Shown one piece after another: positions 3,798 through 60,347 of a DNA stretch of 64,000 bases. The translations under genes were made by a program, and so were the position numbers. The stretch lies in IMG/VR virus record IMGVR_UViG_3300043464_001630, positions 62,001 through 126,000 of that record. One strand, written 5' to 3'. The notes beneath the pieces are model-generated. The model had not been told where the DNA came from. It worked only from the letters and a program-made list of their open reading frames with translations, and did not search any database. How positions within the stretch are numbered: position 1 is the first letter of the stretch; every line of letters begins with the position of its first letter.

Positions 3798-4070
3798 ATG
3801 AATTTCGAAATGTTATTAGAAAGAATGGAACTACTAGAAGCCAAATGTACAAAGGTAACAAAGAAAGCACATTCAAACAGAAAAGGAAAAAAGTGGACTA
3901 AATGTGCTCGTCAATCTGATGGTAGTATTAAACGAATTCACTGGGGACAAGCAGGTGTGCGCGTAGGAAGTGGAAATTCCAAACGTGCTAAAAGCTTTCG
4001 TAAAAGGCATGGCTGTAGCAAAGCAAAAGCAGGAACTCCAAAAGCAATGAGCTGCAAAAATTGGAAATAG
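3798..4070 (+). CDS. Small basic Cys-containing protein (KSFRKRHxC type seen in T4-like phages)
   Basis: Start at 3798 (TAAATA 3787-3792, N5); Lys/Arg-rich; RAKSFRKRHGCS...MSCKNW. Confidence 0.7.
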   Translation: MNFEMLLERMELLEAKCTKVTKKAHSNRKGKKWTKCARQSDGSIKRIHWGQAGVRVGSGNSKRAKSFRKRHGCSKAKAGTPKAMSCKNWK

Positions 4071-4096
4071 CTTATTACCAAATACTTATAAAATAT

Positions 4097-4465
4097 TTAC
4101 TTCCTCCGTGGACTACTTGTAGTTCCAAATTTAGCATTCTTTAAAGATCTTAAATTCTTTTTAGCATCTTTTTCTACGTTTGGATTATAAGATTTCCAGT
4201 CACCCAGATGTCCAATTTTTAAATGACATCCCGCATCTCCTTTTTCTTCACACAATGTAATTAGATTTGTAGCTTCTAATTCTAATTCTGGATGAATATG
4301 AAACGGCTTTTTGTGGTGAACTTGAAGGTTATTAGAGTTACCACAATTTGCACAAGTTTTATTAGATTCTAAAAATTCTTTACGAACCTTTTGCCACTTG
4401 GATGATCTTACAGAAAATGGCTTTCCTTGTAACTTTTCTTTAATGGCAACTACGAATCTAATCAT
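4097..4465 (-). CDS. HNH endonuclease
   Basis: CxxC...QVHHKKP...NLITLC...CHLKIGH zinc/HNH pattern. Confidence 0.85.
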   Translation of the reverse strand: MIRFVVAIKEKLQGKPFSVRSSKWQKVRKEFLESNKTCANCGNSNNLQVHHKKPFHIHPELELEATNLITLCEEKGDAGCHLKIGHLGDWKSYNPNVEKDAKKNLRSLKNAKFGTTSSPRRK

Positions 4466-4790
4466 TTAAGTATTTAATGTATAAATCTTTCGGATCTTCA
4501 AATAGATTAAAATAAGAACCGAATTTACTTCCCATGAAAAACGATTCACCATTCCATTCGTAAATTAAAGTATAGTCAGTATTATCTTCGTATTTCAAAA
4601 TGACATCATAATCTTCTATATATTCCGTAGAAATTTCTACTTCGAAGTCTTTACACATAAATTGGTGCTTGTCCATTATGTGATCTATGACAATATTCAT
4701 TTCTGTACTGATATAATCATATAACCCATCTTCGGATTCAATCCTCCACATCAATCTGTCTGGGTCGTAAAATCTACAAATCTTTTTCAT
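4458..4790 (-). CDS. Hypothetical acidic protein
   Basis: 110-aa ORF with TAATG coupling to the upstream gene. Confidence 0.65.
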   Translation of the reverse strand: MKKICRFYDPDRLMWRIESEDGLYDYISTEMNIVIDHIMDKHQFMCKDFEVEISTEYIEDYDVILKYEDNTDYTLIYEWNGESFFMGSKFGSYFNLFEDPKDLYIKYLND

Positions 4791-5440
4791 TAAGATTTAA
4801 TTAAAAAATAACTTAAATGTTTTTGTATCGAAAGCTCTGGGTATACAGGTTTTACTATTTTATCAAAAGCTCTTTTATATAAATTTTCTCTTTGAGAGAA
4901 TCCTCGTTTTGATTCTCTATCGTTTCTTATTTGTTTAGATATTTTATTCATTGAGAAATTCGCTAAGACATCAAAACGAATTATTCCGTTTTTAGTTCTA
5001 TTTTCCCAATCTTTTGTTGTCTTATTTACACAATTTTTATAAGAATTTAAAAACATTATCGCGATATTCATAACCGTAGAAACGATAGTCGTCGCATCGA
5101 ATGAACTTGTTTTAAGTTTAAATTTATCTATTTTAGGACGGAAAAGAATAACGAAAGTTTCTAAAACATCCTCGATAAAAAGATTTCCATTCAATGTCGA
5201 TGGATATATCATCACTTCTATTTCTTCTCCTGTTTTATTTTCAAAATAACATTTTATATAATAAACTGGATTTTTGCTTTTATATTTTAAATGATAATTA
5301 AATATCTTATCAAAATTTGGAAATCTTTCTTCTCTACCAGCAGCAAATACTGCCGTTATTTCTTTTAATGGATAAGAATTATCGAATAATTCACATAATA
5401 AATATTTTTCATAAATCAGTTCATTATCCGATAAGTTCAT
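4790..5440 (-). CDS. Hypothetical late protein with N-terminal IYEKY..L.E signature
   Basis: 216-aa ORF, perfect TATAAATA 5 nt upstream. Confidence 0.7.
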   Translation of the reverse strand: MNLSDNELIYEKYLLCELFDNSYPLKEITAVFAAGREERFPNFDKIFNYHLKYKSKNPVYYIKCYFENKTGEEIEVMIYPSTLNGNLFIEDVLETFVILFRPKIDKFKLKTSSFDATTIVSTVMNIAIMFLNSYKNCVNKTTKDWENRTKNGIIRFDVLANFSMNKISKQIRNDRESKRGFSQRENLYKRAFDKIVKPVYPELSIQKHLSYFLIKS

Positions 5441-5445
5441 ATCAT

Positions 5446-5453
5446 TATTTATA
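5446..5453 (-). promoter_or_regulatory. T4-type late promoter TATAAATA
   Basis: Exact T4 gp55 consensus, 5 nt before ATG 5440. Confidence 0.8.
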
Positions 5454-6508: not shown

Positions 6509-7294
6509 TTATTCGTCTATTCTTCCTGTAGATTCGAATACACAGCCAACTTCGAAATTATGGGTAGTTCTAGATGTTCTTCTTTTAATTTTGAAAGTTT
6601 GTCCCTTACTTAACATTGTGAAATATTCTCCATCTATTTTAAGTTCATTCATAAAATTTGTGTAGTTGTATAGATATTCTTGAGTATTTCCATTTGGATG
6701 AGTAACTCTAATGTTTAGTTTGAAATGGCCGAACTCTCTTAATTTTTTTGAAAATTCCTTTTGTTTTTCGCTAGTTCCATTATTTTTATAATATTGTTTT
6801 AATTTTTCTGAATTATCTTTACATTTCTTTAAATGCATTTGTTTGAAATTTTCATCATTTTTGTATTTCTCTTTCATGGTTGCGGATTGTTTGATTCTTC
6901 CCAATAATTGTAATTCTGTGTGTCCTTCTTTGTATCTTTTCTTTTTAGTTGTTGATATTTTTTCAAAAACTTGATTTTTGAAAGATTCATCAAAATAACA
7001 AAGCATATACCCACCAGTTCCTCCAATATGGATATTGTAACAATTTTTTCCATATTTATACTTCAATCTTCTTATTAATTTTTTCTCTAATAAATCTAAT
7101 TTTTCTTTACTGTCTATTTTTAATTTTAACCAACGTCTGGTGAAATTTTCTCTTCCGTACTTTTTAACTGCTTTCAGAAAAATGGTAGTGCCAGAACCAA
7201 TATAATCATCGGTTCTATATCCTATGTGTTGTCCTCCGTAAACTTTTCCATTTATGTTGTTGACTGTTATATATAATAAAAATTCTTTTTGCAT
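6509..7294 (-). mobile_element. Free-standing GIY-YIG (Seg-like) homing endonuclease gene
   Basis: LLYITVNNINGKVYGGQH...YIGSGT...NF.R..L...E motif; basic C-terminal half; immediately downstream of gp23; start at 7294 (TAAATA-N7-ATG). Confidence 0.85.
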
Positions 7295-7364
7295 ATGAAG
7301 GTATTTACTATAATGATAACCGGAAATATAGCAATTTGTTAGATAAAAGCATAATGACAAAAAA

Positions 7365-7426: not shown

Positions 7427-8983
7427 TTAAAAATATATTGAGCTGTTACCGGGCGTAAATGCCTGACCAAGATTCTTGAGAATAATGGTGTGGTAGTATA
7501 AACTAGCTCCGAAGATGTTATCTACCACCCCATATCTCGTCAATAGTCCAACGCGAGGAGCGAAGTCATTCGGTCCGATTGTGCGTTGTACCATTACAGG
7601 AATGTAAGGGCAATAGATGATACCAGAATCATAAAATTCAGTACCTTTGTATCCGAGGAGTGCATACTCGATGCCTTCTGGACCAGTACCAACTCCATAG
7701 CCTACGTCACCATAAACTCCACTGTTCTGTACTTCGGTGCGTGTATCACGATAAACTTGGAAACGACCACCGAGTGAACCAACTTTAGCTACGCCAGTTT
7801 GCTGGGTAGAAACGTTGCCTTGTACAGTTACCCACTGGAATTCGGGGAGCATTTCAAAAATAGCGCACACGCGAGGTGTTGCTACGATGAAGTTTGCTGG
7901 TCCACGACGATTGCGGATAGCGATACGATTTGCTTCAATAATTACTCTCTGGTAGAAGTCACGATTACGTTCAACAAGCCAACGGCCATCGGCAGTAGAT
8001 GGAGACCAGACTGAGAATCCTTTACGGAAACCACCATTTAAGGAGGTTTGGATCATACGGATAATCATTTCACGGTCGATTTCTGCTTGAATCTCATATG
8101 CCATTGCATTAGTGATTTCAGCGTCGATATCAATACCGTTCATGTTACGTAAGTCTTGCTCTAGCTCGACAGACCATTTTGCACCTAACCTACGAGTACC
8201 AGCTTCAACGGCAGTCTTCTCGAAGGATACTTCAACAGTTGGGATGTTTGCGTTGATTTCGAAATTCTTGAGAATTTCAGCAACACCACCATCAGCAGCA
8301 TTAAAGTTCCACGTTACGCCAGATTCGGCATGAGTACCGAGACCTGATAGCGCACCAGCAGAAACGCCAGTGAAACGTGAATCGAGATATTGCCATCCTA
8401 GTTCGTTGTCGCCTTGTGGGGACTTACCACCTGCTCCACCGGGAAGACCACTTCCGAAGTTATCACCAGAAGCTCTGTAATTTACAGTAGTTTGGTTATG
8501 AACTCCGGGGGCTGCATCCCAAGAACCACTCTGAGAGGAGTCTTGATAGTTGCCACCTAGGGTATCCTTGGAGTACTTATAACGTAGAGCGAATGCTAGT
8601 CCAACGGGACCAGACATGGGCTGAACGCCAACGATTTCGTTGGAGATAAGTTCTGGGAAGGTACGACGAATCATCGGAATAAGAATCTTAGGAAGACGAT
8701 TGTCGCCAGAAGCATAGCTATCAGAGCCACCGGGGAATGCTCCACCAGTGCCACCGTTGTTGATAGAACCGAACATAGTTCCTGTTCCACCAGCTACGTT
8801 TGCTTCACGTAAGCAATAAGCTTCTTGGTTTTCAAGTAGCATTGCAGTGTTTAGACGAGTATGATCATCTTCAATTGCGGCTACGCTCTTGCTGGTGTAG
8901 TCGAGCACTGGTGCCCACTTTTCCAAAAGAACCTTAGCGCGATCTTGATCGATGTATGATTGTGCGGGTTTGATTTGTTTCAT
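7427..8983 (-). CDS. gp23: Major capsid protein
   Basis: EIVGVQPMSGPVGLAFALR, RRLGAKWSVELEQDLRNMNGIDIDAEIT, GIIYCPYIP...FAPRVGLLTRYG. Confidence 0.98.
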   Translation of the reverse strand: MKQIKPAQSYIDQDRAKVLLEKWAPVLDYTSKSVAAIEDDHTRLNTAMLLENQEAYCLREANVAGGTGTMFGSINNGGTGGAFPGGSDSYASGDNRLPKILIPMIRRTFPELISNEIVGVQPMSGPVGLAFALRYKYSKDTLGGNYQDSSQSGSWDAAPGVHNQTTVNYRASGDNFGSGLPGGAGGKSPQGDNELGWQYLDSRFTGVSAGALSGLGTHAESGVTWNFNAADGGVAEILKNFEINANIPTVEVSFEKTAVEAGTRRLGAKWSVELEQDLRNMNGIDIDAEITNAMAYEIQAEIDREMIIRMIQTSLNGGFRKGFSVWSPSTADGRWLVERNRDFYQRVIIEANRIAIRNRRGPANFIVATPRVCAIFEMLPEFQWVTVQGNVSTQQTGVAKVGSLGGRFQVYRDTRTEVQNSGVYGDVGYGVGTGPEGIEYALLGYKGTEFYDSGIIYCPYIPVMVQRTIGPNDFAPRVGLLTRYGVVDNIFGASLYYHTIILKNLGQAFTPGNSSIYF

Positions 8984-10014: not shown

Positions 10015-10653
10015 TTAAAAATCTTCAGGAATGTTTGGGGGAACGTCTAGATGTTCTTTGGTATCAAACTGCATTTGATCTTCGAACCTTTGTTCGAGTT
10101 TTCCCAATTCTCTATATAACTCTTTGAAATTTTCTTCGTGTTCGATTTCGCCTTGTTGATGAGCAATTTTAATTGCTTTTCCGATTTCAGATTTAAGACC
10201 TCCGATATCTTCGATTCTAATTTTTCCGCTAGAACTTACTCCATACATATGTGAGCGTTGACCACCGTGATAATGTTGTAAATCAAACAAAGCAGAAGCA
10301 GCTCCGCTTCCATCAGAAACATAATCATGAAGATCAATCAAAGATGATTCTGACAAACCTTCTTTAACTAATTTTTTTTTAGATTTTGCTTTAGGAAATT
10401 TTCCCTTACCAAATGCGCTTTTATCTGCGGCGGCTTTTTCACCTTTTTCGTTTCGAGCTTTCTTTTTGAATGGCTTGAAACCTTTCTTTTTATCTTCTTT
10501 GGTCTTTTTAAATGGATTAACTTTTGCTGCTTCTGAGATTGTAATTTTAATTTTTTGATTAATTACATTTTCTAGAAATTTATGAGCAGTACTAAAGTCA
10601 TCAATAATTAAAGAATCGACAAATTTTACAATATTTTGTTCTACGATATTCAT
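10015..10653 (-). CDS. Prohead core protein, gp67-like N-terminus with basic linker and C-terminal extension
   Basis: N-terminal FVDSLIIDDFSTAHKFLENVINQKI helix recalls gp67; lies between gp21 and gp22. Confidence 0.55.
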   Translation of the reverse strand: MNIVEQNIVKFVDSLIIDDFSTAHKFLENVINQKIKITISEAAKVNPFKKTKEDKKKGFKPFKKKARNEKGEKAAADKSAFGKGKFPKAKSKKKLVKEGLSESSLIDLHDYVSDGSGAASALFDLQHYHGGQRSHMYGVSSSGKIRIEDIGGLKSEIGKAIKIAHQQGEIEHEENFKELYRELGKLEQRFEDQMQFDTKEHLDVPPNIPEDF

Positions 10654-10661: not shown

Positions 10662-11333
10662 TTAGCTTAATTTAATTTTATTTAAAAAATTAATGATGGA
10701 TTCTTTTAAATATTCTTCTACTTTCTTTTTTGGTAGATTAGAAATGCTACGTTCGAAGTCATCATATATTTCTTCAAAAGATCCAGATTCTCCCAGAACC
10801 CATGCTTTGGATTCTAGAATTCCGTTTACGAATGCTTTTGGAAAACTTGGGTCGGCTACACAATCAATAGAAATAAGACGTAGATCTTTTACTACATTTT
10901 TACCACCAGCGGCTTCTTCTAGTTGTCCTAGTGCTCTGGAACTCATGCCCACTCGAACTCCGTCATTTACTAGTGCTCTTACGATATGTCCGCAAGGTGT
11001 AGTTAGTACTTTGCTTTTTCCGTGGAAAATATTACCGTCTTGATAAAGTTCAGTTACGATATGACAAGCTTTGTCGAGACTAACTTCTGCGCTACTTTCG
11101 TGGTTTAAAGTTCCCATCGAACGGTTGGTACGAATCATCTCTTCTTTATAACGATTAACTTCTTTAACCATTTCGTCTAATTTGTACAAACGATTGTTGC
11201 GGTTGTAATTTTCCGCCATCATGTAAGGCCCTTTAATAAACAGGGTAGATGGACTCTTTCTATCTTTTTCCTCAAAGATATACTCAAACTGTTCGTCTGG
11301 TGCAGGTTTTTCTACAATTAATCGTAGTGACAT
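10662..11333 (-). CDS. gp21: Prohead protease
   Basis: YMMAENYNRNNRLY, GTLNH, VGMSSRALG, IDCVADPSFPKAFVNGILE. Confidence 0.97.
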   Translation of the reverse strand: MSLRLIVEKPAPDEQFEYIFEEKDRKSPSTLFIKGPYMMAENYNRNNRLYKLDEMVKEVNRYKEEMIRTNRSMGTLNHESSAEVSLDKACHIVTELYQDGNIFHGKSKVLTTPCGHIVRALVNDGVRVGMSSRALGQLEEAAGGKNVVKDLRLISIDCVADPSFPKAFVNGILESKAWVLGESGSFEEIYDDFERSISNLPKKKVEEYLKESIINFLNKIKLS

Positions 11334-11383
11334 AAAACTATTTAGAGTAATTAATTATTTTTTCAGATATATTTAACCAAAAA

Positions 11384-11391
11384 TATAAATA
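11384..11391 (+). promoter_or_regulatory. T4-type late promoter TATAAATA
   Basis: Exact consensus 5 nt before ATG 11397; divergent from the gp21 motif at 11339-11344. Confidence 0.8.
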
Positions 11392-11396
11392 ATCGT

Positions 11397-12422
11397 ATGA
11401 CTACAGATTCAGTAGAAATTTTTGAAAATTATTTAAAATCGTTAAACGAAGCACGAGCACCAAAAGGTACTCCTCGTCCAGATGTTATTGGAAGCAAAAT
11501 GCACATTCAAAAAACTACAATGGCGAGTAATCCAGACGCCGCAGAATCACAAGGAGCTACTATTGGTAGAAATACTGCACTAACTCCAACGCAATCAGAT
11601 AGAATTCGTGATAGAAACTTCGAAGAATATATGATGGATGATATGGAAGAAGGTTTATATCTTCAATTAACTGGAGAAGGATCTAGAGTTCCGAGAAATT
11701 CGCAAAAAAATTTAATGAAATTAATGCGTGAATATTCAAATAACAAATACTTTCAAACCCAAGTAGATGGCGATTTAGTAATTCCTTATTGGATAGTTCC
11801 AGAATGTATTCAATATTTCACAATGAATGCAAAGTCTGAAAAAGATCAGAATATCAAACAAGCATATATAGATGCACTCATATTTATGTACGAAGCCATG
11901 AGTGATAAAAGTACATACGAAGATGTGTATAGAAATTCCAAACCTGTATTAAGAATTAAAACAGAAGGAGGAACAAGAGAAGTATCAGATTTGAAAGATA
12001 CATATGAAGAATTCTCTCCTAAAATAATCGGAAGAATTAAAACATTAAAATCTAACCCAGCTATGGGATTAGCATTAAAGACATTTCTACTTCCAAATCA
12101 AACAAAACCAAGAGAACAAATAAAATTCGGATCTGACATTTATAGAGATGCTCCGTTCGTACACGATCCCGAAACAGGTCGTCATGGTATTCACGGAAAA
12201 GGTGAACACGAACCTAAAAATAAATATGATGCGACAGATCCAACATACGGAGTAAGCAGTGCTGAAAATCTCAGAGATAGTGATTTCGAAAAGATTCGCA
12301 TAAAAAACAAAGAACAAAGAGAAAGTACTCCGACTCCAGCAAGATCATTAGGAGCGCCAAAAGTTAAAAAATCTAGAAAAAAAGTTAACGAATCCTTTTT
12401 TATTAAAGTTATTCCATTCTAA
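11397..12422 (+). CDS. Hypothetical late protein with N-terminal IFENY..LNEA signature
   Basis: 341-aa ORF with its own late promoter. Confidence 0.75.
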   Translation: MTTDSVEIFENYLKSLNEARAPKGTPRPDVIGSKMHIQKTTMASNPDAAESQGATIGRNTALTPTQSDRIRDRNFEEYMMDDMEEGLYLQLTGEGSRVPRNSQKNLMKLMREYSNNKYFQTQVDGDLVIPYWIVPECIQYFTMNAKSEKDQNIKQAYIDALIFMYEAMSDKSTYEDVYRNSKPVLRIKTEGGTREVSDLKDTYEEFSPKIIGRIKTLKSNPAMGLALKTFLLPNQTKPREQIKFGSDIYRDAPFVHDPETGRHGIHGKGEHEPKNKYDATDPTYGVSSAENLRDSDFEKIRIKNKEQRESTPTPARSLGAPKVKKSRKKVNESFFIKVIPF

Positions 12423-12897: not shown

Positions 12898-13356
12898 TTA
12901 ACTTGGAAAGAGTTCTTTTTCGGTTAATATTATAAACTCTGCTCCTCTATCTTTTGCATACTTTTTAGCGGCTTCCCATTTAGCTTGGTTAACCGCCCAT
13001 TGTGTGTTTTCATACAATACCGTAGCTTTCTTTTTCTTTTTAGAAGGAACTGGAGCCAAAGTTTGTTTGTATGGCTTTATTTCTATGAGATATTTCTTAA
13101 TTTTATCTCCTTCTTTTAAGACTATGTAATTGTCTACAAAATATCGGTGTATTCTGTTGTCTATTGGACTTCTATAATTTACTACGATATTCTCAGATCC
13201 CCACTCAATAACATTAGGGTTGGAATCTGCCCATAAAAGAAACTTTCGTTCATAAGAAGATCTGAAGACTGCATATTCTCCCATGAACTTTTGGGGATTT
13301 TTAGGTTTAAAATAACCTTGTTTAAATCGTTCATCTTTTTTTCCTAATGGAAGCAC
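12898..13356 (-). CDS. gp4: Head completion nuclease (TnsA-like)
   Basis: FRSSYERKFLLWADSNPNVIEWGSE...HRYFVD...LIEIKP...NQAKWEAA...ILTEKEL; GTG start with TAAATA-N5. Confidence 0.95.
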   Translation of the reverse strand: MLPLGKKDERFKQGYFKPKNPQKFMGEYAVFRSSYERKFLLWADSNPNVIEWGSENIVVNYRSPIDNRIHRYFVDNYIVLKEGDKIKKYLIEIKPYKQTLAPVPSKKKKKATVLYENTQWAVNQAKWEAAKKYAKDRGAEFIILTEKELFPS

Positions 13357-13364
13357 GTTATTAT

Positions 13365-15521
13365 TTAACTTTTCAATAATAAACTTCTGATTAAATTGTA
13401 AATCACAGAATCATTTAATTTTTCCTTTTGTTCCGTAGGTTCTACTATTTCTAAATTTTGTAGATCAATTCCAGATATATATTTTATCAAATTTCTGCTA
13501 ATCGTAATTTTTTGTAACTTGCTAGAATAAATAACTGCATAATCTCCTTTAAGTTCTTGTAACTTTGGTAAATAAATAATATTTGCGTTATGAGCACGGA
13601 TATAACCGCTCTCTTTTAATTGTGGTAATTCTATTTTAGCAGCTTTTTCACAATCAATATCACCACTTTCTTTTAATTGTGTTAAATGTAATGAACGTAC
13701 CGAATTCGCAGAAATTTTACCACTTTTTACTAATTCTGGTAATGATAAAGTCTGTGTTAAACTAGCATATATAGCCCCACTCTGGATTAATTCGGGTAAT
13801 GATAAATTTAATGTTCTTCGGCAGAAAATAGATTTACAATATTTTAATTTTGGTAACGATAAATTTCGTATTTCTTCAAAAAGAATATTTTCACTTTTTT
13901 CTAATTGTGGTAATGTTATTGTTATGGCTTTTTCGCATCCAATATCACCACTTTCTTTTAATTGTGGTAAGTCCAAATTTGTCGCTAAATGTGCAGTTAT
14001 ATTACCGCTCTTTTTTAAGAATGGTAAAGATACAACTGTTGCGTATTCGAAATTCATATCTCCGCATTCTAACAAATTAAATGGAAATAATACATATTTA
14101 AGAGGCCATACAAATCTATCTAAAATAACCACCCCATTTTCATTTATTTGATGTTTTCGATTATTTAAAAAATCTTGAACAATTTTATTTATATTTTTAT
14201 TAAATTTTGGATCATCTTTCTTTAAACTTAAAAACCACATGGTGCTACCAAAATTTTCCAAAAAACTATTTGAAAAATTTTCCACATCTTTCAAAGCATA
14301 TAATTGATTTGGCGTAAAATCCAGTCCATCTTCATAATCATAGTCGTCAGGAGTCCATTCCGATACTTCAAGTTCCACTCTTCTTTTTACATTTTGTAAA
14401 TATTGTTTATGTAATCTAGGCTTTCCTTCGAAAACATAATCAGGAATATCATATTTTTCCGTAACATAAATAGCCTTTTCCAAAATCTTATTCCATTCTT
14501 CTTTTGGAATTCCATTCCATTCTTCTGGTTTTATATCTTTAAATGATGCAAACGTCACTCGATCTTCCGTATTTTTAAGTTCTAAGATACTTTCTAAATC
14601 ATAAAATTTTTGATAGAATTCCAATTCTCTGCCTCTAATTCGAACATAATTGAATACATTATTTTCAAAAGGTTCTGTCAATTCTGGGTAAAGTTTCAAT
14701 AATTCTTCTTTAGAAATACTAATATCCTCATTTTTTGTCATCGGATTGTACTCTAATTCTCCATCTTCATCTACATCAACCAACATATAGCGTCCTCTTT
14801 TTTTGAGATAACAGAAATATGTAGTTAACTTGTCATTCCATCTATAATCGTGATAATGATAACTAGCATTTGACCCAGAAATACACAGATTTGTTCCTTT
14901 TCCAAATTCTTTACATCTTTTGACTCCATTAATCGGATTTTCCGTATCATTAGCCAAATACACCGCAACATCATCATTTTCGAACAATGCTTGTTCTGTT
15001 TGAGTTTTTTTAATTTCTTGTGGTTTATGTTTTTCCTTACCAGCCAAGGAATGCACAATATCCATCCATTTTGGGATACCTTTTTGAAAAAGATTAGAAA
15101 ATTGAGGGTTGTTCAGTAATTCCTCTTTCTTATCTAAACTATCTTTGTAATCATGTAGAAGAACTGGTAATGCTCTATTATATAAATTTTTATTAATCTT
15201 GGATTCATCTCCATTAATCTGATTAACATATTGTTGTGTACCAGACATCATAAGCAAAGAATTGATCAAGCTCATTAAATCTTTACCTTCAAATAATTCC
15301 CCGCCTTTTTGTTTTTGTATTTGTAAAATCTGATTTATTATATCAGTAGCTATCGAATCTGCTTCGTTTTTTAAATTTGGATTAGATTCATAAAGAGAAG
15401 ATCCAGTAATAAATTTAGCCAATAATTCTTCAGGATCATCAGATTTTATAACATCTTTAGCTTCTAATAAAATTCTATTATAATATATATCAAATATACT
15501 ATTTTCGTCATTCATCAACAT
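13365..15521 (-). CDS. Large late protein with C-terminal 19-aa leucine-rich repeats
   Basis: Eight consecutive 19-aa LPxLxxSGxIxxxxxxxLx units; central CKEFGKGTNLCIS...YFCY domain; N-terminal RILLEA. Confidence 0.75.
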   Translation of the reverse strand: MLMNDENSIFDIYYNRILLEAKDVIKSDDPEELLAKFITGSSLYESNPNLKNEADSIATDIINQILQIQKQKGGELFEGKDLMSLINSLLMMSGTQQYVNQINGDESKINKNLYNRALPVLLHDYKDSLDKKEELLNNPQFSNLFQKGIPKWMDIVHSLAGKEKHKPQEIKKTQTEQALFENDDVAVYLANDTENPINGVKRCKEFGKGTNLCISGSNASYHYHDYRWNDKLTTYFCYLKKRGRYMLVDVDEDGELEYNPMTKNEDISISKEELLKLYPELTEPFENNVFNYVRIRGRELEFYQKFYDLESILELKNTEDRVTFASFKDIKPEEWNGIPKEEWNKILEKAIYVTEKYDIPDYVFEGKPRLHKQYLQNVKRRVELEVSEWTPDDYDYEDGLDFTPNQLYALKDVENFSNSFLENFGSTMWFLSLKKDDPKFNKNINKIVQDFLNNRKHQINENGVVILDRFVWPLKYVLFPFNLLECGDMNFEYATVVSLPFLKKSGNITAHLATNLDLPQLKESGDIGCEKAITITLPQLEKSENILFEEIRNLSLPKLKYCKSIFCRRTLNLSLPELIQSGAIYASLTQTLSLPELVKSGKISANSVRSLHLTQLKESGDIDCEKAAKIELPQLKESGYIRAHNANIIYLPKLQELKGDYAVIYSSKLQKITISRNLIKYISGIDLQNLEIVEPTEQKEKLNDSVIYNLIRSLLLKS

Positions 15522-15533
15522 ATTTTTATTTAC

Positions 15534-16091
15534 CTACTTTCTAAAAAAGAACCCTATTATGGAGCTTCCAATACTTAGAAACTTAGTAGGAAAAAAGTAA
15601 AACAAAGCTCCTAAAGAAGAAAGTATGATTCCAAGTATTGCATATAGCTTTATGGTTTTCTTTCTTTCGTAATCTTTAATTGTCTTTGCTTCTATATTAT
15701 CAGTAACTATTTCAGCTACTAATTCTTCGTTCTTTTCTTCTAGAACTTCGATATCTGATAAGTCTTTTTTACTTTCGTTGAACACTTCTTCTATAGCTTT
15801 ATCTTGTTCTTCTGTAGATAAATCTTTATATTCCGAACCGTCGTCTACTTTTGCTCCTAGTAGAGTTTGACTTTTTTCTATAATATCAATAGCTCTTTTA
15901 ATTTCAGACTTTTTTAAATCTTTTTTGTTTAAAATGTTTTTAGCAGTTGCTATGAAATCTTTGGCATCTTCTTGAAGCTTTTGTTGCTTCGTGTCGATTT
16001 CTTTTTGATATTTTGTACGACTTGCTGTGGGTGTTGAACATCCAGAAATCAATAAACAAAGTATTAATAAATATTTGTATAAAGTTTTCAT
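15534..16091 (-). CDS. Lipoprotein with coiled coil and C-terminal transmembrane segment (spanin-like)
   Basis: MKTLYKYLLILCLLISG|C lipobox; charged helical middle; hydrophobic C-terminus LYAILGIILSSLGALFYFF. Confidence 0.65.
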   Translation of the reverse strand: MKTLYKYLLILCLLISGCSTPTASRTKYQKEIDTKQQKLQEDAKDFIATAKNILNKKDLKKSEIKRAIDIIEKSQTLLGAKVDDGSEYKDLSTEEQDKAIEEVFNESKKDLSDIEVLEEKNEELVAEIVTDNIEAKTIKDYERKKTIKLYAILGIILSSLGALFYFFPTKFLSIGSSIIGFFFRK

Positions 16092-16118: not shown

Positions 16119-17294
16119 CTACGAAATCATAAAAATCGCAGGTGAACTGTCGCCGAACGCCGCCGCGTTAGTAAACAATTGTGTTTCTAACTTCTCTTTT
16201 TCAGTTAAACCTTGTTGCATTAAATCATTTGTAAATACTTGTCCTCCGAATAGATTCACTCCGCTAAATTTACCTCTAACATTACCTATCATTATTTTTG
16301 ATAGAGCTAATGCATATTGATATACCCACATTTCTTTTATTAAATCGCGTATCGGGCGTTCTACATAACAATAGATAACTCCGTAAAATCTGACCGAATC
16401 TGAAGGTTCTGGATATATTCTTAATATTTGAGTTCTGTCATCAAATTCAAAAGATCTTTTAGTTGCTAAAACCTTTTCACGAGTATCTAGCCATTGCTTT
16501 ACAGTATACCAACTAACAAGATCAAATCCATAGTTACCCATTGCATAACTAAAATAAGTTTGTTGTGCTAAAGTCTGTTCAATAGTGAAAAGAGTATTAA
16601 TACCAGTAGATGCTCCTTCTTGGAAATCGGTAACTGCTATTACTTTTCTATAATCCATTGCATCATAATCAAACATGTTGTTATAAATTACTGTAGGTTG
16701 ATTTTCGTCTACAGTTCCTTGCATACTTATAGTCTGGCTATATGATGGTATGAAATAAGTTGAAATTGGTATTACATTTAATGTAGGATCAGCCGCAAAT
16801 GCGGTGACTACTTGATTGTAAGTAGAATAATCCAAAATAACATTTCTTTCTAATCCATCTACGAATAATCCAGATAATTCAGAATTAATGGAAAAGAATG
16901 CTTTATTAAGAGCAGAAGCTGATATATAAAAAGTATCTTCGTTCTTTATGTAAGGAGCAGTATCTCTAGATTGTGTACGATGTGCTACTTTGTTTTGTGG
17001 AGAAATATTGCCATTTGCTAACGTAAATAACTTATCAATTGGCAATCCTCTTCCTCTTTCATATAAACTAGAATCTATTACTAGATATTCTTGGGTATAC
17101 CCAGCATATTTAGAGAAAAATTCACATGCTTGCGAAATAGCATCAAATAGTTGGTCTCTGCTAATTTCAACAGAAACCAATGGTGCTCCCAGAGTTCTTA
17201 CGATTCTTTGTGCCAACTTATCAAAAGAATCCATTTTATTATTCAGATTGGTATTCTGAAAAGCCGAAACTGGCGTTAAATTTCCACAAGACAT
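16119..17294 (-). CDS. gp13: Neck protein
   Basis: LGAPLVSVEISRDQLFDAISQACEFF and WVYQYALALSKIMIGNVRGKFSGVNLFGG. Confidence 0.93.
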   Translation of the reverse strand: MSCGNLTPVSAFQNTNLNNKMDSFDKLAQRIVRTLGAPLVSVEISRDQLFDAISQACEFFSKYAGYTQEYLVIDSSLYERGRGLPIDKLFTLANGNISPQNKVAHRTQSRDTAPYIKNEDTFYISASALNKAFFSINSELSGLFVDGLERNVILDYSTYNQVVTAFAADPTLNVIPISTYFIPSYSQTISMQGTVDENQPTVIYNNMFDYDAMDYRKVIAVTDFQEGASTGINTLFTIEQTLAQQTYFSYAMGNYGFDLVSWYTVKQWLDTREKVLATKRSFEFDDRTQILRIYPEPSDSVRFYGVIYCYVERPIRDLIKEMWVYQYALALSKIMIGNVRGKFSGVNLFGGQVFTNDLMQQGLTEKEKLETQLFTNAAAFGDSSPAIFMIS

Positions 17295-17350: not shown

Positions 17351-19588
17351 TTATGCTGCTGGTGGGGGAGCTGATTCTGCTGGTGGAGGAGTTTCTCCTC
17401 CTTCTGGTGGCGCTCCTTCTTCTCCTCCTTCTGGAGGTGGAGGTGGTGCTCCTCCCATTCCACCCATGCCGCCTCCTCCCATTCCTCCACCCATACCACC
17501 ACTTGGTGGTGCTCCTCCACCTCCGGGGGCTCCTCCTGCTTCTGCTTGCGCAGCTACGGCTTGTTTCCAGTTAGGCCCCATATTTTCAATTTGTGTCAAT
17601 TCCCAACGTAATTCTTTATCTTTTCTCAAGAATTCACGATTCGCTTTGATATCTACATCACTCCATCCCAGATATCTCTTCTGTGCAAAAGAAGGAGAAA
17701 TTGATTCATTAGATGCTAACGAACCGAAATTCTGTACTTTAAGTTCTAGCTTCTGACTTTCTCTAAGTTCGTAGAAGTTCGTCGGAACATTAAATTCAAT
17801 ATGAATAGTTTCTTCTTTTAATTCATATTCTTTCCACATTCCTTTTAATTGTAAATGTGTAATAAATCCATTCTTTAATCCACTTGCAAATATATTTTGT
17901 AAACGAATAATAAAACGTGCAAATTTTAATTCTTCACGAAGCATATCAGCACCATCACGAAATGCATCTTGTGGATCTAAACGAGTCGTAGGAACTTTTA
18001 ATGATTGATAAAGCTTCTTAACGAAGTACATTAAATCTTCCAAATTTCCAAGGTTCGAATTTTTCGTAAATACCCCACAATCAAGGGCAAACGTATGATA
18101 ATCATGATATTTCTCATCGTTATCAATAGTCAGTGTACCTACTTGAATTTTTTCTGATAATTTGTTTATAGTTTTTATATAAACCTCATTATCATCAATA
18201 CTCATCATTTTCTGACCTTCTGTTAGATCTTTGGCTTCTACATTTCCAATTCCATATATAGGAAATTTATGATCTAACGTACATACAACATTTTTACCAT
18301 TAGTAAAAATTATTTCCAATACTTCCGCAGAATCTTGGGTAACTCCAGCCCAAGATACAATTCCTTGTTTAATATCACCAGTCTTGTAATCAACGCTATA
18401 AGACCACAATTCCTTGCCATTTTTAAATTCTTCTGTTATTTCAGAAATAGACAATATTCTTCCATCAGTAAGAAGAACCTTCGTATCCATAGCCAAACAT
18501 CCTCCAGCTAATTGCGTAACACTAGTTCCTTCAGAACCAGCACGTTTTGCAAACCAAAAGTTATCAAGAATTGATTGTGGTTTAAATTTCTGCACAATAC
18601 CAGCTTGATCTGGATCATATGTTTTAGAAGACCAATAATTAGTAATTAATTTACGAAGGTATGCTTCTGCTTTTGGTGCTGGCATGTTTCCAACATCAAC
18701 ATTAAACACCAAACGTTCGGGAGCACGAGCCAAACGATAAATGATAATCGAATCTTCGATCATGGATAATTGGCGATATGCTCTTCTTGCGTTTTCTAAG
18801 AATGGAAGACGCATGGTTTTATTTTCATTCCATACATCAGAATGTACATATGTAATCTGATTTTTATCCATCGGAACGTAATCAATACCAACTTGTTTCA
18901 AAGGATTATTCGGATCAAATTTAGGCTTACGATACAAATATCCCTTTACCATTACATTCTGAACATTAGAAAATACAGGATCAATTAATTCAGTAGGAAC
19001 CTGAACAACTCCCAAAACTCCTTCTTCTACATAATCTTTATGAATAATATGTTCCCAATAAATTTCTCCTTCGACTAATAGCTGACGAAAATAACTCCAG
19101 CCTTTATGTTCGAAGTCGAAATAATTAGTATACTTTAAAAACTCCTTTTCGATGGTTTCTTTTTGGAAATCCGAAAGATTGACATTTCTGTATTTTATTT
19201 TTAAACAGCTACTTGTGTGAGGATCTATATTAATAATTTCATCACAAATCTCATCTAATGCATTAGCAACTTCGGAAAAAGCTGCCATGATACGATAATC
19301 TTTAACACGAGCCAATTTATCCTTTTGGATATTGGCATACATTACTTCACTGTAACGCTTATCAGAAGATACGGTTCCTACGGTTTCGTTGTTAAACTCA
19401 AAATTTTGTGAAATCGAATGGCGGGACAAAACTTCCGCACGTTTCATTCCAGTATCTTCAAAATATCTATACTTCGGATTTAAATTCTGAACCATTTGAT
19501 TTGTATCAAATCCAGAATACGGAAGCTTAGATGAAATATAATTCATCAATTCTTGTCTAAAGGATGTAGATCCATTAATTTCAGCCAT
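17351..19588 (-). CDS. gp20: Portal protein containing a mini-intein
   Basis: YRLARAPERLVFNVDVGNMP..KAE.Y, FVKKLYQSLKVPTTRL, REELKFARFIIRLQ; Gly/Pro-rich tail. Confidence 0.97.
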   Translation of the reverse strand: MAEINGSTSFRQELMNYISSKLPYSGFDTNQMVQNLNPKYRYFEDTGMKRAEVLSRHSISQNFEFNNETVGTVSSDKRYSEVMYANIQKDKLARVKDYRIMAAFSEVANALDEICDEIINIDPHTSSCLKIKYRNVNLSDFQKETIEKEFLKYTNYFDFEHKGWSYFRQLLVEGEIYWEHIIHKDYVEEGVLGVVQVPTELIDPVFSNVQNVMVKGYLYRKPKFDPNNPLKQVGIDYVPMDKNQITYVHSDVWNENKTMRLPFLENARRAYRQLSMIEDSIIIYRLARAPERLVFNVDVGNMPAPKAEAYLRKLITNYWSSKTYDPDQAGIVQKFKPQSILDNFWFAKRAGSEGTSVTQLAGGCLAMDTKVLLTDGRILSISEITEEFKNGKELWSYSVDYKTGDIKQGIVSWAGVTQDSAEVLEIIFTNGKNVVCTLDHKFPIYGIGNVEAKDLTEGQKMMSIDDNEVYIKTINKLSEKIQVGTLTIDNDEKYHDYHTFALDCGVFTKNSNLGNLEDLMYFVKKLYQSLKVPTTRLDPQDAFRDGADMLREELKFARFIIRLQNIFASGLKNGFITHLQLKGMWKEYELKEETIHIEFNVPTNFYELRESQKLELKVQNFGSLASNESISPSFAQKRYLGWSDVDIKANREFLRKDKELRWELTQIENMGPNWKQAVAAQAEAGGAPGGGGAPPSGGMGGGMGGGGMGGMGGAPPPPPEGGEEGAPPEGGETPPPAESAPPPAA
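18059..18499 (-). mobile_element. 147-aa mini-intein in portal (no endonuclease domain)
   Basis: LAGG|CLAMDTKVLLTDG (block A), VCTLDHKF (block B), YHTFALDCGVFTKN|S (blocks F/G, +1 Ser). Confidence 0.92.
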
Positions 19589-21222: not shown

Positions 21223-21247
21223 GAAATTATTTATTTATAAACTATAT

Positions 21248-27726: not shown

Positions 27727-27728
27727 TT

Positions 27729-32518: not shown

Positions 32519-32532
32519 AATGTAATTATAAA

Positions 32533-39477: not shown

Positions 39478-39648
39478 TGTATTTTTTAATTTTCTTTTTT
39501 GATATTTTTTCTTTTTCCCGAGAATTACAGGAATTCTGTTATCTCCAGCGGCATATTCTTTGTTTTGATCTGGATTTAAGATACTTCCTGCTCCTCCAGC
39601 AGTCATTGTTTCTAACAATTTTTGATATAATTCATCAAATCTCTTCAT
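39472..39648 (-). CDS. Small late protein (N-terminal KLLETM)
   Basis: 58 aa from ATG 39648, TAAATA-N5. Confidence 0.6.
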   Translation of the reverse strand: MKRFDELYQKLLETMTAGGAGSILNPDQNKEYAAGDNRIPVILGKKKKYQKRKLKNTL

Positions 39649-41517: not shown

Positions 41518-41545
41518 TTGAATTATTATGGTTTTGAGGTATAAT
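41518..41545 (+). promoter_or_regulatory. sigma70-type promoter of gp55
   Basis: TTGAAT-N16-TATAAT, 9 nt before ATG 41555. Confidence 0.75.
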
Positions 41546-41554
41546 GCTTATTAT

Positions 41555-52997: not shown

Positions 52998-53771
52998 TTA
53001 GTAGTTACGGTATTTTTCTTCTTGTTTAAATTTATGCTGGCGAGATTTAATATAATTTTCTTGTAATAGTTTTGTTACTTGTTCTTTTGATAATTTTACG
53101 TTTTCTTTTGCTATTTCTTTCGGATGATATACTTTCTTGATATTATTTTTTGCATATCCAGCATAAAAAGGTGATTGGCGAGTTTCACATCCGCATGTTT
53201 TGACTTCTTCGGCATCTTCTTCCTCTGATTCTTCGTCGTCTGATTCGTATCCTTCTTCGTCTTCGTAGTCGTGTTCTTCGTCTTCTTGTTGTTCGCCAGA
53301 AAATTCCATTTCCAAATCATCATCTTCTGATTTGATAGGAGTAGCATTAATTATTACTGCGGTCGGTGCTGATTCTTCGGTTTCGTCATCGTAAAAATCT
53401 TCGAAATCGTCGTCATCGTCGCTAGAATCTGAAGGAAGTCCGCTATCCATTACATCAGACATTTCACCTTCATCTTCTTGGCGAGAATTAGCAATTCCAT
53501 CTTTTAACTCAGGAATGAATTTATTTCTAGTGATAGATTCTGAATTTGCAATTCTGATGATATCTTCGTCAGTTACTTCGTTGATATCATAATCTTCTCC
53601 TAATTCTTCTCTGAGAGTATCTGCGATTTTACCAACTACATAAGTAGGAGAATTACCAAGAGAAGTTCTTTTAAATAAATTAGCAATTCGTTGCTTTAAT
53701 CCATCTGTATGAAGCAACCCTTCATTTATAATTTCTCTGTTAGCCCATCCTATGCGGTTTAAAATACTCAT
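52998..53771 (-). CDS. Acidic low-complexity late protein
   Basis: Long D/E tracts; N-terminal IINEG; TAAATA-N6. Confidence 0.75.
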   Translation of the reverse strand: MSILNRIGWANREIINEGLLHTDGLKQRIANLFKRTSLGNSPTYVVGKIADTLREELGEDYDINEVTDEDIIRIANSESITRNKFIPELKDGIANSRQEDEGEMSDVMDSGLPSDSSDDDDDFEDFYDDETEESAPTAVIINATPIKSEDDDLEMEFSGEQQEDEEHDYEDEEGYESDDEESEEEDAEEVKTCGCETRQSPFYAGYAKNNIKKVYHPKEIAKENVKLSKEQVTKLLQENYIKSRQHKFKQEEKYRNY

Positions 53772-58296: not shown

Positions 58297-58500
58297 ATGG
58301 AAATAGTAAGACCAGTACAAATCACATCACCAATTAGCGGTCAGCCATCAATTCCTAAGATCACTGAACGCCAATATGGCGATAAGATTTACGTAGAAGC
58401 AGTATGGTATGATAATGCTTCTGGTGCCTTTATCAGGAAGGGTGTTGTACGAATTCTTGATGCTACCACCAAAGAAGACATCACTTCCCAATGTAAATAA
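58297..58500 (+). CDS. Small hypothetical protein
   Basis: 67-aa ORF, TAAATA-N6-ATG. Confidence 0.65.
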   Translation: MEIVRPVQITSPISGQPSIPKITERQYGDKIYVEAVWYDNASGAFIRKGVVRILDATTKEDITSQCK

Positions 58501-58536
58501 GTTGATTTTTAGAATCACTTTTGTTAGCATGGTTAT

Positions 58537-59520
58537 GTGAACCATATTTCCGAAGACTTTATTGTAAATAAATTCTATCAATTCGTTGGGCTTCCTAAAA
58601 AGAACCGATACAGTGATACTTATCAAGGTTCTTGCCCAATGTGTAGAGAGGGTTCTAGTTGGTTGAGAAAGCAGAGATTCTTCTTTATTCCTAAGAAGAA
58701 TCTTTGTTTTTGTCATAATTGTGGTTATTCGGCTAATCCTATAAAATGGGTCGCTGATGTTTCAGGAATCACAATAAAAGAGGTTATGGAAGAAATGGGA
58801 AATAACGTAGTCGATATTTCTCTAGAAGAAGAACATAAACCAAAAAAAGTAGCAGACACGCTTCCTAAAGATTGTATTAATCTTTTCGATCAAAGTCAGG
58901 TAGATTATTACAAGAATAATAAGATTGTAAACAAAGCAATAGAATTTATAAAGAATCGAAAATTAACTGATGCAGTTAATAAACCAAAGGCACTGTACTT
59001 GTCATTAAGTGACAGTGTACATAAAAATCGACTTATAATTCCTTTTTTTGATGATAACGAAAAGATTGTTTATTATCAAAGTAGAACAATCTTAGAAAAT
59101 GAAGAAATGTTCAAGCCCCGATACATTTCTAAAATAGGAGCAGAAAAGTCGGTATTTAATATAAATTTGGTGAGTGCAGATTCTGAGTATATCTTCGTTT
59201 TTGAAGGGCCTATCAATTCCTGCTTTATGAAAAACGGAGTAGCAGTCGGCGGAATACAAGAAAACTCCTATCAATTATTCACCAACTTCCAAGAAGAACA
59301 GATGAATAAATATCCGTTTCATAAAAGAATTTGGATATTAGATTCTCAGTGGAAAGACAAGGCGGCTTTCAATAAGACTAAAAAGTTAATAGAATCTAAA
59401 GAAAAAGTCTTTATGTGGCCTAAAGAAATAGGAAAAATCTGTAAAGATTTCAATGACATAACAATGAAGTTAGACAAAAACGAAATCTCTACAGATTTTG
59501 TATTGAAGAATATTATCTAA
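58537..59520 (+). CDS. gp61: DNA primase
   Basis: CPMC...CFCHNC zinc ribbon, RLIIPFF, YQSR, TOPRIM FEGPINS...ILD, KDFND. Confidence 0.93.
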   Translation: MNHISEDFIVNKFYQFVGLPKKNRYSDTYQGSCPMCREGSSWLRKQRFFFIPKKNLCFCHNCGYSANPIKWVADVSGITIKEVMEEMGNNVVDISLEEEHKPKKVADTLPKDCINLFDQSQVDYYKNNKIVNKAIEFIKNRKLTDAVNKPKALYLSLSDSVHKNRLIIPFFDDNEKIVYYQSRTILENEEMFKPRYISKIGAEKSVFNINLVSADSEYIFVFEGPINSCFMKNGVAVGGIQENSYQLFTNFQEEQMNKYPFHKRIWILDSQWKDKAAFNKTKKLIESKEKVFMWPKEIGKICKDFNDITMKLDKNEISTDFVLKNII

Positions 59521-59524
59521 AAAA

Positions 59525-59971
59525 CTAGACTCCTTTGAGACTAGAATTGTTAGAACTAGCTAGATAACCTTTAAACATTTCGTTTAAAGAAGAAACTTCC
59601 ATAGCAACACGGGCAATCTTCTTTGTTTCTGCTACACGAATCTTATCGAAGAGAGTATCTGGTACACAATTCTTTAGTTTTGATTGTAAAGAACTTTCAT
59701 CTGTACCGTTGAGAAATTTAGAGAATTGTTCGAGTTGTGTAATCCAACCTTTCAATGAAGCTACCATGTTGGCTTGCATCTTTGAAGTAGCCATCATGTG
59801 ATCAGCAGCAGCTCCTGCATCACCGTCAAAATCTGAAGGATTTGTTCCTTTATCTAGTGTTTGAGCCATAGCATCAGCATCTGATAGTTCTGATGCTGGA
59901 TCTGGTTGAACTGGTTCTGGAGCTTCGCGTAATACGTGTACGAATGCTTTTTCAAAAAGATTACTACTCAT
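59525..59971 (-). CDS. Hypothetical late protein (N-terminal LFEKAF..VLREA)
   Basis: Start moved to 59971 (TAAATA-N5). Confidence 0.75.
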   Translation of the reverse strand: MSSNLFEKAFVHVLREAPEPVQPDPASELSDADAMAQTLDKGTNPSDFDGDAGAAADHMMATSKMQANMVASLKGWITQLEQFSKFLNGTDESSLQSKLKNCVPDTLFDKIRVAETKKIARVAMEVSSLNEMFKGYLASSNNSSLKGV

Positions 59972-60005
59972 GAAATTATTTAGTTCAAAATAGTAAATAA
60001 TTCTA

Positions 60006-60347
60006 GTGAAACGTAAAATTTTAAAAGAAGACATGATGGCTAATGCAGAACGCCAAACGACAAGCGTTGGGCCGGGTGCAACAGATCATCCATTCTATCA
60101 AATGGCTGTTCCCACAAGTCCTGATGCATTTAAAAGTCCATCAGATCGTGTATTGCCGTTCGAAATAGATAAGTTTAAAAATAGACTGTTTGAAATCTTA
60201 GAAAAGACTATTTTATTACGAAAAGACTTTGATAAGTCTTTAAAGAATCCATCTGTAAAAGATTCACAAAAAGTAGCAATTCGTAAATCTATTAAAAGAT
60301 TAGATCGTATTAACGAAATGCTCATAGATATTCCTGATTATCTGTAG
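60006..60347 (+). CDS. Hypothetical late protein
   Basis: GTG start, TAAATA-N6; divergent partner of 59971. Confidence 0.7.
   Translation: MKRKILKEDMMANAERQTTSVGPGATDHPFYQMAVPTSPDAFKSPSDRVLPFEIDKFKNRLFEILEKTILLRKDFDKSLKNPSVKDSQKVAIRKSIKRLDRINEMLIDIPDYL

Follow-up and report, generated by a model that had tools for sequence, protein, structure and literature searches.

Exchangeable N-terminal leaders ending in L/I-x-E on late proteins of an uncultured T4-like phage: probable capsid-targeting propeptides

The IMG/VR virus record IMGVR_UViG_3300043464_001630 (236,391 bp, CheckV completeness 100) reads as the genome of a T4-like myovirus that is distant from the known ones. Its bases 62,001-126,000 (hereafter the window; 64,000 nucleotides, G+C ~32%) were analyzed together with the rest of the genome, and many late proteins were found to begin with short leaders that end in (L/I)-x-E. 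These leaders are restricted to the N-termini of late genes, are exchanged between orthologues as modules with a conserved junction, and occur in a genome that encodes a gp21-type prohead protease and a gp23 whose L-x-E site is homologous to that of T4. We consider the leaders to be T4-type capsid-targeting propeptides that are cut by the prohead protease, with a probability of about 0.7; the binding of the leader proteins to the prohead core, their cleavage, packaging, and ejection would then proceed by analogy with T4. Below, positions refer to the window unless they are given as genome positions, most genes are named by the position of their start, and an arrow marks a cleavage junction, which is a predicted one for all proteins of this phage and its relatives.

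In phage T4, the internal proteins (IPs) carry N-terminal propeptides of 10-19 residues, the capsid-targeting sequences (CTSs), which target the scaffolding core and are removed by gp21 (PMC9026906, PMC3012670). Among T-even phages the IPs are diverse, with more than 30 variants, and the CTS is their sole common feature (PMC3012670, PMC9026906, PMC2839356). The leaders read from the T4 record are MKTYQEFIAE↓A for IPII and IPIII, and MKTFKEF... for IPI. A first-pass annotation of the window had proposed that eleven unrelated late proteins, scattered over 56 kb, are addressed to the head by one short L-x-E peptide and form an injected arsenal.

Late genes were recognized by the motif TAAATA[AG], which ends 3-6 nt ahead of the start codon in about 100 genes, structural genes included (in the window, for example, at 11380-11399, 15522-15540, and 21223-21240); no Shine-Dalgarno sequence was seen between the motif and the start codon. 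It was read as a late motif because it is like T4 TATAAATA, and because of the genes that it precedes. Should TAAATA[AG] be, as in T4, a -10-like late promoter, leaderless or near-leaderless mRNAs would be expected from many late genes. The 318 open reading frames (ORFs) of the genome were called in-house with a codon-usage model, and the likewise home-made division into late and other genes used this promoter-like motif alone, and never the peptide content. All eleven N-termini quoted in the first-pass annotation are present at their coordinates and strands, and the late motif precedes ten of them, 43030 being the exception. The shorter starts chosen at 3798, 39648, and 59971 are supported, the motif ending 3-6 nt before those ATGs. 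Relatives used for comparison were G001 (a distant complete relative; 72% gp23 identity, 41% G+C), G002, and G006 (a close relative of 242.6 kb).

Genome-wide, [LI]-x-E occurs within the first 20 residues in 49/100 late genes versus 40/212 others (p=1e-7), a comparison in which wrong start codons in non-late genes might mask leaders. Interior 20-residue windows contain it in 17.5% of cases. When residues 2-20 were shuffled, 25.1±3.7 late genes were expected to carry the motif, compared with the 49 observed (z=6.5), whereas the 40 observed among the other genes compared with 43.3±5.0 expected; across composition-preserving shuffles, the late N-terminal signal reached z=6.5-9.2. The late excess amounts to ~24 genes. 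In late genes the first site lies most often at residues 6-10; in others its distribution is flat. After removal of the class A proteins described below, the motif was still found in 34/85 late genes versus 40/212 others (p=3e-4). The late enrichment of [LI]-x-E[AG] that had been proposed, counted over the first 30 residues, was borne out genome-wide (21/100 versus 7/212, p=1.2e-6), but was not significant in the window alone (7/31 versus 5/53, p=0.12), where bare [LI]-x-E in the first 20 residues did separate the two groups (20/31 versus 9/53, p=1.5e-5). The signal that had been noted is real, and the cohort is genome-wide and comprises ~24-30 genes. Because bare L-x-E is expected in ~1/5 to 1/4 of any 20-residue stretch, single genes are not callable from it. 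An unsupervised comparison of N-termini found 84 similar pairs in this genome versus 11 in interior control segments (score ≥32), and 10 versus 1 in G001. The bare L-x-E is, on these sequences, the tail end of longer N-terminal leaders, and the idea of one short peptide as the address gives way to at least two defined longer leaders (classes A and B) and a third, T4-CTS-like head (class C), of which L-x-E is the cleavage end.

The class A leader follows the consensus M-N-D-x-x-L-I-W/F-E-x-Y (for example, MNDEELIWEAY), and was found on 16 proteins of 123-718 aa. Most of these (12/16) lie outside the window, mostly at genome 3-52 kb, with genome starts at 3059, 3960, 8404, 14270, 34448, 38291, 38735, 39510, 40668, 50541 (minus strand), 51561 (minus strand), and 217373. 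The four class A genes in the window are as follows.

19633-21222, minus strand: PcfJ-like protein with LRR-type repeats; leader MNDSVLIWEKYTSLHE↓A, nt 21175-21222; PF14284 30.2 bits (cut-off 25)
13365-15521, minus strand: protein of 718 aa with C-terminal LRR-type repeats; leader MLMNDENSIFDIYYNRILLE↓A, nt 15462-15521
11397-12422, plus strand: basic, fast-evolving protein transcribed divergently from the protease gene; leader MTTDSVEIFENYLKSLNE↓A, nt 11397-11450
4790-5440, minus strand: basic protein of 216 aa with a variant class A leader; leader MNLSDNELIYEKYLLCE↓L, nt 5390-5440

The predicted P1' starts of the mature 21222, 15521, and 11397 proteins are ANLISKDPLHLELENILK, AKDVIK, and ARAPK, respectively. 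A six-frame scan for class A, with any start codon and with or without the late motif, added one further clear member, genome 3960, which sits behind a late gene in the same operon; the late motif precedes 15/16 class A genes and most class B genes. The class A core occurs in 15/97 late N-termini versus 2-3 per 1000 interior windows. Cores of classes A and B begin at residues 1-4, finish at residues 9-20, and are 30-50 times commoner at N-termini than inside proteins. All-against-all blastp of the mature parts of the class A proteins gave only one weak pair, and cross-genome similarity between class A proteins with differing cargo is confined to residues 1-18. The proteins are in this sense unrelated, as had been claimed, except that 15521 and 21222 have a common PcfJ-like plus LRR-repeat architecture with repeats of 22-23 residues. 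A paralogous family with a common N-terminal domain was rejected as an explanation, given the lack of similarity among the mature parts. The leader codons vary synonymously (AAT/AAC, GAT/GAC, TTA/TTG/CTG, ATA/ATC/ATT, GCT/GCA/GCC), while the single-codon W is kept; selection therefore acts on the peptide and not on the DNA, and DNA-level conservation, as a promoter/leader cassette or a translation signal, was rejected as the main cause.

The residues around the class A site follow a second pattern. Leaders with IWE↓A usually have no second site, whereas in 8/8 families in which IWE is followed by K, R, N, or I, or is replaced by IWD, another [LI]-x-E lies within 15 aa, mostly followed by A, G, or S. 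The greater part of the class A cargo has no homologue in G001 or G002, and the 5440 protein has none in G001, G002, or G006. G006 carries at least 12 class A leaders, some on orthologues of 61-80% identity, and some on cargo that is absent from this genome. Five longer relatives lacked the strict class A DNA pattern, which in IMG/VR was found only in one close relative of 242.6 kb and one 24-kb contig. The MND..LIWE.Y form in its exact shape is therefore, on these sequences, specific to the lineage; in G001 a class-A-like form of its own, ..I-F/Y-x-L-Y-x-E, is seen.

The class B leader has the consensus M-K/N-F-D/K-D/E-L-V/I-x-x-L/I-L-E, with 8 N-terminal matches here and 11 in G006, compared with ~0.2 expected from the interior rate. 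The class B and class-B-like genes of the window, together with a class C gene that was absent from the earlier list of eleven, are given below.

3798-4070, plus strand: class B leader protein; leader MNFEMLLERMELLE↓A, nt 3798-3839
37994-38434, minus strand: acidic, proline-rich class B leader protein; leader MKFKSLLETHYTLLE↓Q, nt 38390-38434
39472-39648, minus strand: basic class B leader protein of 58 aa; leader MKRFDELYQKLLE↓T, nt 39610-39648
59525-59971, minus strand: small acidic protein (isoelectric point, pI, 4.8) with a class-B-like amphipathic leader; leader MSSNLFEKAFVHVLRE↓A, nt 59924-59971
37162-37563, minus strand: protein with a class C head; N-terminus MISFSRYFYE↓N

The mature 3798 protein is 74 aa long and extremely basic (pI 11.5), and its orthologues, MNFEQLIDMLLIMEE↓KCTKVT and MTTEFDALFEHLLTEA↓KK..CTKVT, combine a variable leader with a conserved mature start. 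Orthologues of 39648 read MDRFDKLFHKLME↓T and MNKFDKLYTQLME↓M, and LLEQ of 38434 is conserved in the G002 and G006 orthologues. The 59971 leader has the same amphipathic spacing as class B, and three relatives keep its site (LRE↓A, LRE↓Q, and LLE↓Q); this protein is possibly a prohead-core component. The class C head, M-K-x-F-K/R-E/D-F/Y-F, is the nearest of the classes to the T4 CTS. Its form F-x-E-[FY]-[FY] is enriched at N-termini in G001, G002, and G006, but not in this genome (3/312 N-termini); orthologues of 37162-37563 begin MILFKEFYSKSE↓N and MQTFKQFFFE↓K. A T4-derived head pattern, used as a separate test of class B, was significantly more frequent in late than in other N-termini of this genome (7/100 versus 0/212), and was diluted in G006 and G001 because the late-motif rule missed TAAATAC promoters there. 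A borderline match of 37162-37563 to PF05618 (retropepsin-like 'Zn_protease') was also recorded (26.3 bits versus a cut-off of 27).

The leaders behave as modules that are exchanged at a fixed junction. Among the 2,819 homologues of the 21222 protein, orthologues start with either a class A or a class B leader: the class A form here continues from the leader as ↓ANLISKDPL..., and the class B forms read MRFSDVITLLE↓ANLYNKND... and MNFNKLTEILLE↓VNLYDK.... In the family alignment (A1), M1, E16, and N18 are invariant and L14 is almost invariant, which means that one mature protein is joined to either of two unrelated leaders at L-x-E↓(A/V/S)N. Remoter PcfJ/LRR homologues of 19633-21222 (P0012, P0019, P0026-P0051; 600-840 aa) have another N-terminus in common, M-(A/P/S)-(V/L/I)-N-L-L-N-(D/E)-K-x-(F/L)-N-x-Y-L-T-D-(I/V)-x-Y-(Q/H)-G, which could serve a different set of elements as an addressing signal of another kind.

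A similar junction is seen in a Tpt1/KptA-like family of at least 54 phage proteins, to which the late gene at genome 13344-14033 and its paralogue 43030 belong. The first 13-40 residues of these proteins vary in both length and sequence (many are class C, one is class A), and yet in 46/54 the leader terminates in [LIVM]-x-E↓G-L-I-T-S-Y-P or in a form that differs from it at one residue; the other members, including a diverged LMQE↓ALTISH subgroup, fall outside this search pattern. The predicted P1' start of the mature 13344-14033 protein is GLITSYPFTNVLTMLNLK, and in its AlphaFold model (pLDDT 86.5), residues 2-24 form a separate, lower-confidence helix before a confident domain. Positional orthologues of 11397 adjoin the protease gene in 8 relatives, with 23% identity overall versus 54% in the first 20 residues, and retain ND..(L/M/S)IFE.Y...[ILV].E↓A. 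At the other end of the 11397 protein (12360-12422), a lysine-rich tail and the peptide ESY(xx)FI(K/R)(V/I/L/N/D)I(P/L)F are found in all nine aligned relatives (C-terminal orthologues compared: L003, L005-L007, L009-L011); this may be a second attachment or processing signal. An atlas search with the 11397 protein returned nothing usable. Together, the class A/B swap and the second-site pattern may bear on what a gp21-type protease and a prohead core recognize.

A machinery that could carry out such processing is encoded in the window, with the genes in T4 order.

10662-11333, minus strand: prohead maturation protease of the T4 gp21 type, Peptidase_S77; PF03420 99 bits (cut-off 27), phrog_207 E 1.6e-52
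7427-8983, minus strand: major capsid protein gp23; PF07068 293 bits
9086-9973, minus strand: gp22-like scaffold, assigned by its T4-like position between the protease and gp23, and by composition
10015-10653: core protein

The first-pass annotation had named this protease, and had placed the same site on gp23 and gp22; both statements held. The predicted gp23 propeptide ends in LRE↓A (residues 57-59, nt 8807-8815), with a predicted P1' start of ANVAGGTGTMFGSINNGGTGGAFPGGSDSYASGDNR, and in a MAFFT alignment this LRE↓A coincides with the LTE↓A at which gp21 is known to cleave T4 gp23. The N-terminus of the scaffold-like protein is MATEITKLLKE↓A, and its 295 aa include 17 [LI]-x-E sites; neither Pfam nor PHROGs returned a family for it. 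The protease itself starts MSLRLIVE, with IVE at residues 6-8, much as T4 gp21 has LIE-9 at its own N-terminus (PMC9026906). When the protease was modelled in complex with the first 30 residues of the 21222 protein, the prediction scored 0.01, which gives no verdict and is not evidence for or against the interaction.

Four class A genes are interleaved with the head genes. Further structural genes of the window are as follows.

17351-19588: portal
16119-17294: head-tail adaptor
12898-13356: gp4-like head-closure protein
21248-22369: gp3-like sheath stabilizer
1210-2436: gp5-like hub

Inspection of the N-termini revealed no leader on the portal, adaptor, gp3, gp4, gp5-like, or fibre proteins.

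By analogy with T4, a late protein of this phage would be made with an amphipathic N-terminal leader of 9-20 residues (class A, B, or C), which would give it affinity for the scaffolding core and cause it to be built into the prohead. The S77 protease at 10662-11333 would then cut after the leader-terminal (L/I)-x-E, as it would cut gp23 at LRE↓A, and would shred the scaffold, leaving the mature protein free in the head with the DNA. Small basic members may act like the T4 internal proteins, and enzymes (GNAT, Tpt1/KptA-like, ParB-N-like, and PcfJ/LRR proteins) may enter the host together with the DNA and act early in host takeover or against defence. The small acidic members are possibly core components that get degraded.

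Several points weigh against this reading. The leader proteins are known from their genes alone, with cleavage and packaging predicted from sequence and ejection into the host by analogy; 'late' status derives from a promoter-like motif. Class A differs in sequence from the T4 CTS, it is uncertain for individual genes whether they belong to the looser classes B and C, and the invariant E at the junction could partly be structural in the mature domain, as in EGLITSYP. The phage also has no cultured relative, its closest deposited gp23 being ~32% identical.

The alternative that survives best, though we hold it to be unlikely, is that the leader proteins are indeed targeted to the prohead and cleaved, but are mostly degraded or expelled parts of the core or assembly apparatus, like T4 gp22, gp67, and gp68, rather than injected effectors. 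The products of 38434, 59971, and genome 130167-130784 are small and very acidic or of low complexity, like T4 gp67, and the 11397 family adjoins the protease and has a conserved C-terminal peptide resembling a scaffold attachment motif. The claim that all members form an injected arsenal is weakened to this extent, since the small acidic members may be prohead-core components that are degraded. However, folded enzymes or large repeat proteins account for many of the members (GNAT, Tpt1/KptA-like, PcfJ/LRR, ParB-N-like), and their quick turnover between close relatives fits arms-race effectors rather than assembly parts; T4 Alt and the IPs take the same route and are injected (PMC3012670).

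It is quite improbable, in our estimate, that the leaders are functional but serve another purpose, as a tag for the tail, the membrane, or a partner protein, as a stability or degradation tag, or as a translation booster for near-leaderless mRNAs. Late starts lie 3-6 nt behind the motif, so that the first codons could affect initiation; no similarity in sequence links class A to the T4 CTS, and the basis for cleavage and packaging by the prohead route is itself sequence. A translation effect fits poorly with codons that vary synonymously while residues, including the single-codon W, are kept. The interchange of two unrelated leaders on orthologues, always with L-x-E at the same column, and the appearance of a second canonical site whenever the first is poor, both argue against these alternatives. 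Tail, neck, and portal proteins are without leaders, and the leaders are acidic and amphipathic, and not Sec- or Tat-like. Finally, the proposal that L-x-E is simply too short and the list a selection artefact, for which speak its presence in 17-19% of 20-residue windows at large and in 19% of the N-termini of non-late genes, the value of p=0.12 for [LI]-x-E[AG] in the window, and the lack of leader-like context at 60006, 53771, and 43030, is refuted for the cohort as a whole and stands only for those three doubtful items, because the enrichment is specific to late genes and N-termini, survives the shuffles, and involves a motif embedded in long conserved leaders.

As capsid-targeting propeptides, the leaders resemble those of T4 (the CTSs of IPI, IPII, and IPIII, and the propeptides of Alt and gp24) in lying at the extreme N-terminus, in ending in (L/I)-x-E, and in being the main thing common to otherwise unrelated late proteins. 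Both phages have a Peptidase_S77 protease and a gp23 site at the homologous position, and in both the cargo includes small basic proteins and an enzyme with the ADP-ribosyltransferase fold (T4 Alt is packaged and gp21-processed), with a hypervariable repertoire among relatives; the acidic members here resemble T4 gp67. In contrast to T4, classes A and B are unlike MKTYQEFIAE, which class C alone resembles, and at least two or three classes of leader occur side by side and substitute for each other on orthologues. The ~24-30 leader genes (~8-9% of ORFs), all known here as genes, compare with a handful in T4; many of the cargo proteins are large, the largest having 718 aa. In the giant phages phiKZ, 201phi2-1, and SPN3US, a gp21-related protease processes many head and ejection proteins at a short motif, on the C-terminal side of Glu (PMC5694885). 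Extra sites within propeptides occur there as well, and diverged paralogues may have identical N-termini; the motifs are S/A/G-x-E or A-x-E, and the propeptides often exceed 100 residues (PMC5694885). Here, L/I-x-E is combined with leaders of 9-20 residues (up to ~40) in a T4-like genome with T4 gene order. The present findings fit this known mechanism, and differ in the leader sequences, in the coexistence of interchangeable classes, in how many genes per genome are involved, and in how large the cargo is and of what kind.

Most cargo proteins have no match in Pfam or PHROGs, and the cargo types first suggested hold as leads: PcfJ and LRR (21222, 15521), the ADP-ribosyltransferase fold (the 43030 family), and acidic proteins. 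Most close homologues of the 21222 protein carry PF14284, and its C-terminus has LRR-type repeats of 22-23 aa; the atlas feature matches of 15521 and 21222 to LRR and PcfJ clusters are leads only. The protein of genome 50161-50541 is a GNAT acetyltransferase (Pfam 35 bits, cut-off 20.7). The model of the 13344-14033 protein has a Tpt1/KptA RNA 2'-phosphotransferase fold (Foldseek E 2e-5, prob 1.0; DarT1 also listed), and its family has invariant H and R-I-Y motifs. Identity with Tpt1/KptA and DarT is 12-18%, the global TM-score of 0.3-0.4 is low because of domain placement, and the N-terminal leader ending x-E↓GLITSYP is a feature of the phage proteins. Weak matches include two small ParB-N-like proteins, one with a class A and one with a class B leader, and one DUF5700 peptidase. 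The 39648 and genome 53982 proteins are small and basic, whereas those of 38434, 59971, 53771, and genome 130167-130784 are acidic. Eight of the eleven members first listed carry class A, B, or B-like leaders; the remaining three are individually unsupported.

43030-43764, plus strand: paralogue in the Tpt1/KptA-like family, with ILLE↓G at residues 21-24, lacking the late motif
52998-53771, minus strand: very acidic conserved protein (pI 4.2) with [ILV]-x-E-G at residues 14-17
60006-60347, plus strand: protein with a GTG start and ILKE↓D

The 43030 gene is co-oriented with replication/repair genes. Its product is 26% identical to the late paralogue 13344-14033 (alignment A2), aligning through H128 and R158-I-Y, had no Pfam match, and gave atlas matches that are weak leads; it is possibly an early paralogue that stays unpackaged, in the manner of T4 ModA/ModB. 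Immediately upstream of it, a 500-aa gene (41528-43027, plus strand) has a sub-threshold match to the PF14890 intein splicing domain (26 bits). In more than 60 homologues of the 53771 protein, MSILNRPGWANR..[ILV].EG.LH.D.LKQRI is conserved, and its site is not a variable leader because it lies inside a conserved N-terminal block of 40 residues. At 60006, L-[KR]-E-D is conserved in two close relatives and absent from the G001 orthologue.

Other observations concern neighbouring and distant genes. The ORF at 6509-7360 (minus strand), directly downstream of gp23, starts ..KEFLLYITVNNINGKVYGGQH and looks like a GIY-YIG homing endonuclease by this motif alone, Pfam giving no match; T4 has segD in this position. 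The late-module gene at 15534-16091 (minus strand), which lies between the adaptor gene and class A gene 15521, begins with a lipoprotein-type signal, MKTLYKYLLILCLLISGC, and is conserved in G002. Two late proteins at genome 7124-8395 and 54244-55608 (L099, L101) have twin-arginine-like N-termini (MNRRDFIYTGLVGG... and ..RTRRDFLNNFGWGIGG..), and recall DUF1501-type proteins, a possible clue to the host group that was judged on N-terminal sequence. A run of sugar-nucleotide and glycosyltransferase genes occupies 25405-33513 (minus strand), and is read from its gene content as a phage-borne deoxysugar pathway.

25405-26244, minus strand: NTP_transferase
28408-29250 and 32533-33513, minus strand: NAD epimerase/dehydratases
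31002-31736 and 31733-32518, minus strand: GT2 enzymes

IMG/VR contains ~600 or more gp23 relatives at 66-95% identity, while the nearest gp23 protein in 50,697 deposited phage records is ~32% identical (cyanophages), and a near-identity DNA search with 5 kb of the head module against the phage collection found no match. It is conceivable, though somewhat less than an even bet, that this whole clade uses a small set of interchangeable leaders, each with the prohead-protease site at its end, to load ~25-30 fast-changing proteins per genome for co-injection, among them a nucleic-acid ADP-ribosyltransferase-like enzyme, an acetyltransferase, and ParB-N-like and PcfJ/LRR proteins. If so, the leader grammar, of which class C is shared with T4, would predict injected proteins of uncultured phages from sequence. 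For the present phage, if the leaders act as in T4, they would provide a sequence-only listing of the proteins that are carried in the head and probably delivered along with the DNA, which are those likeliest to act first against host defences. The list would comprise ~25 candidate early effectors, mostly without known relatives, and the leaders themselves are candidate portable tags for loading foreign proteins into the capsids of a non-coli phage lineage.

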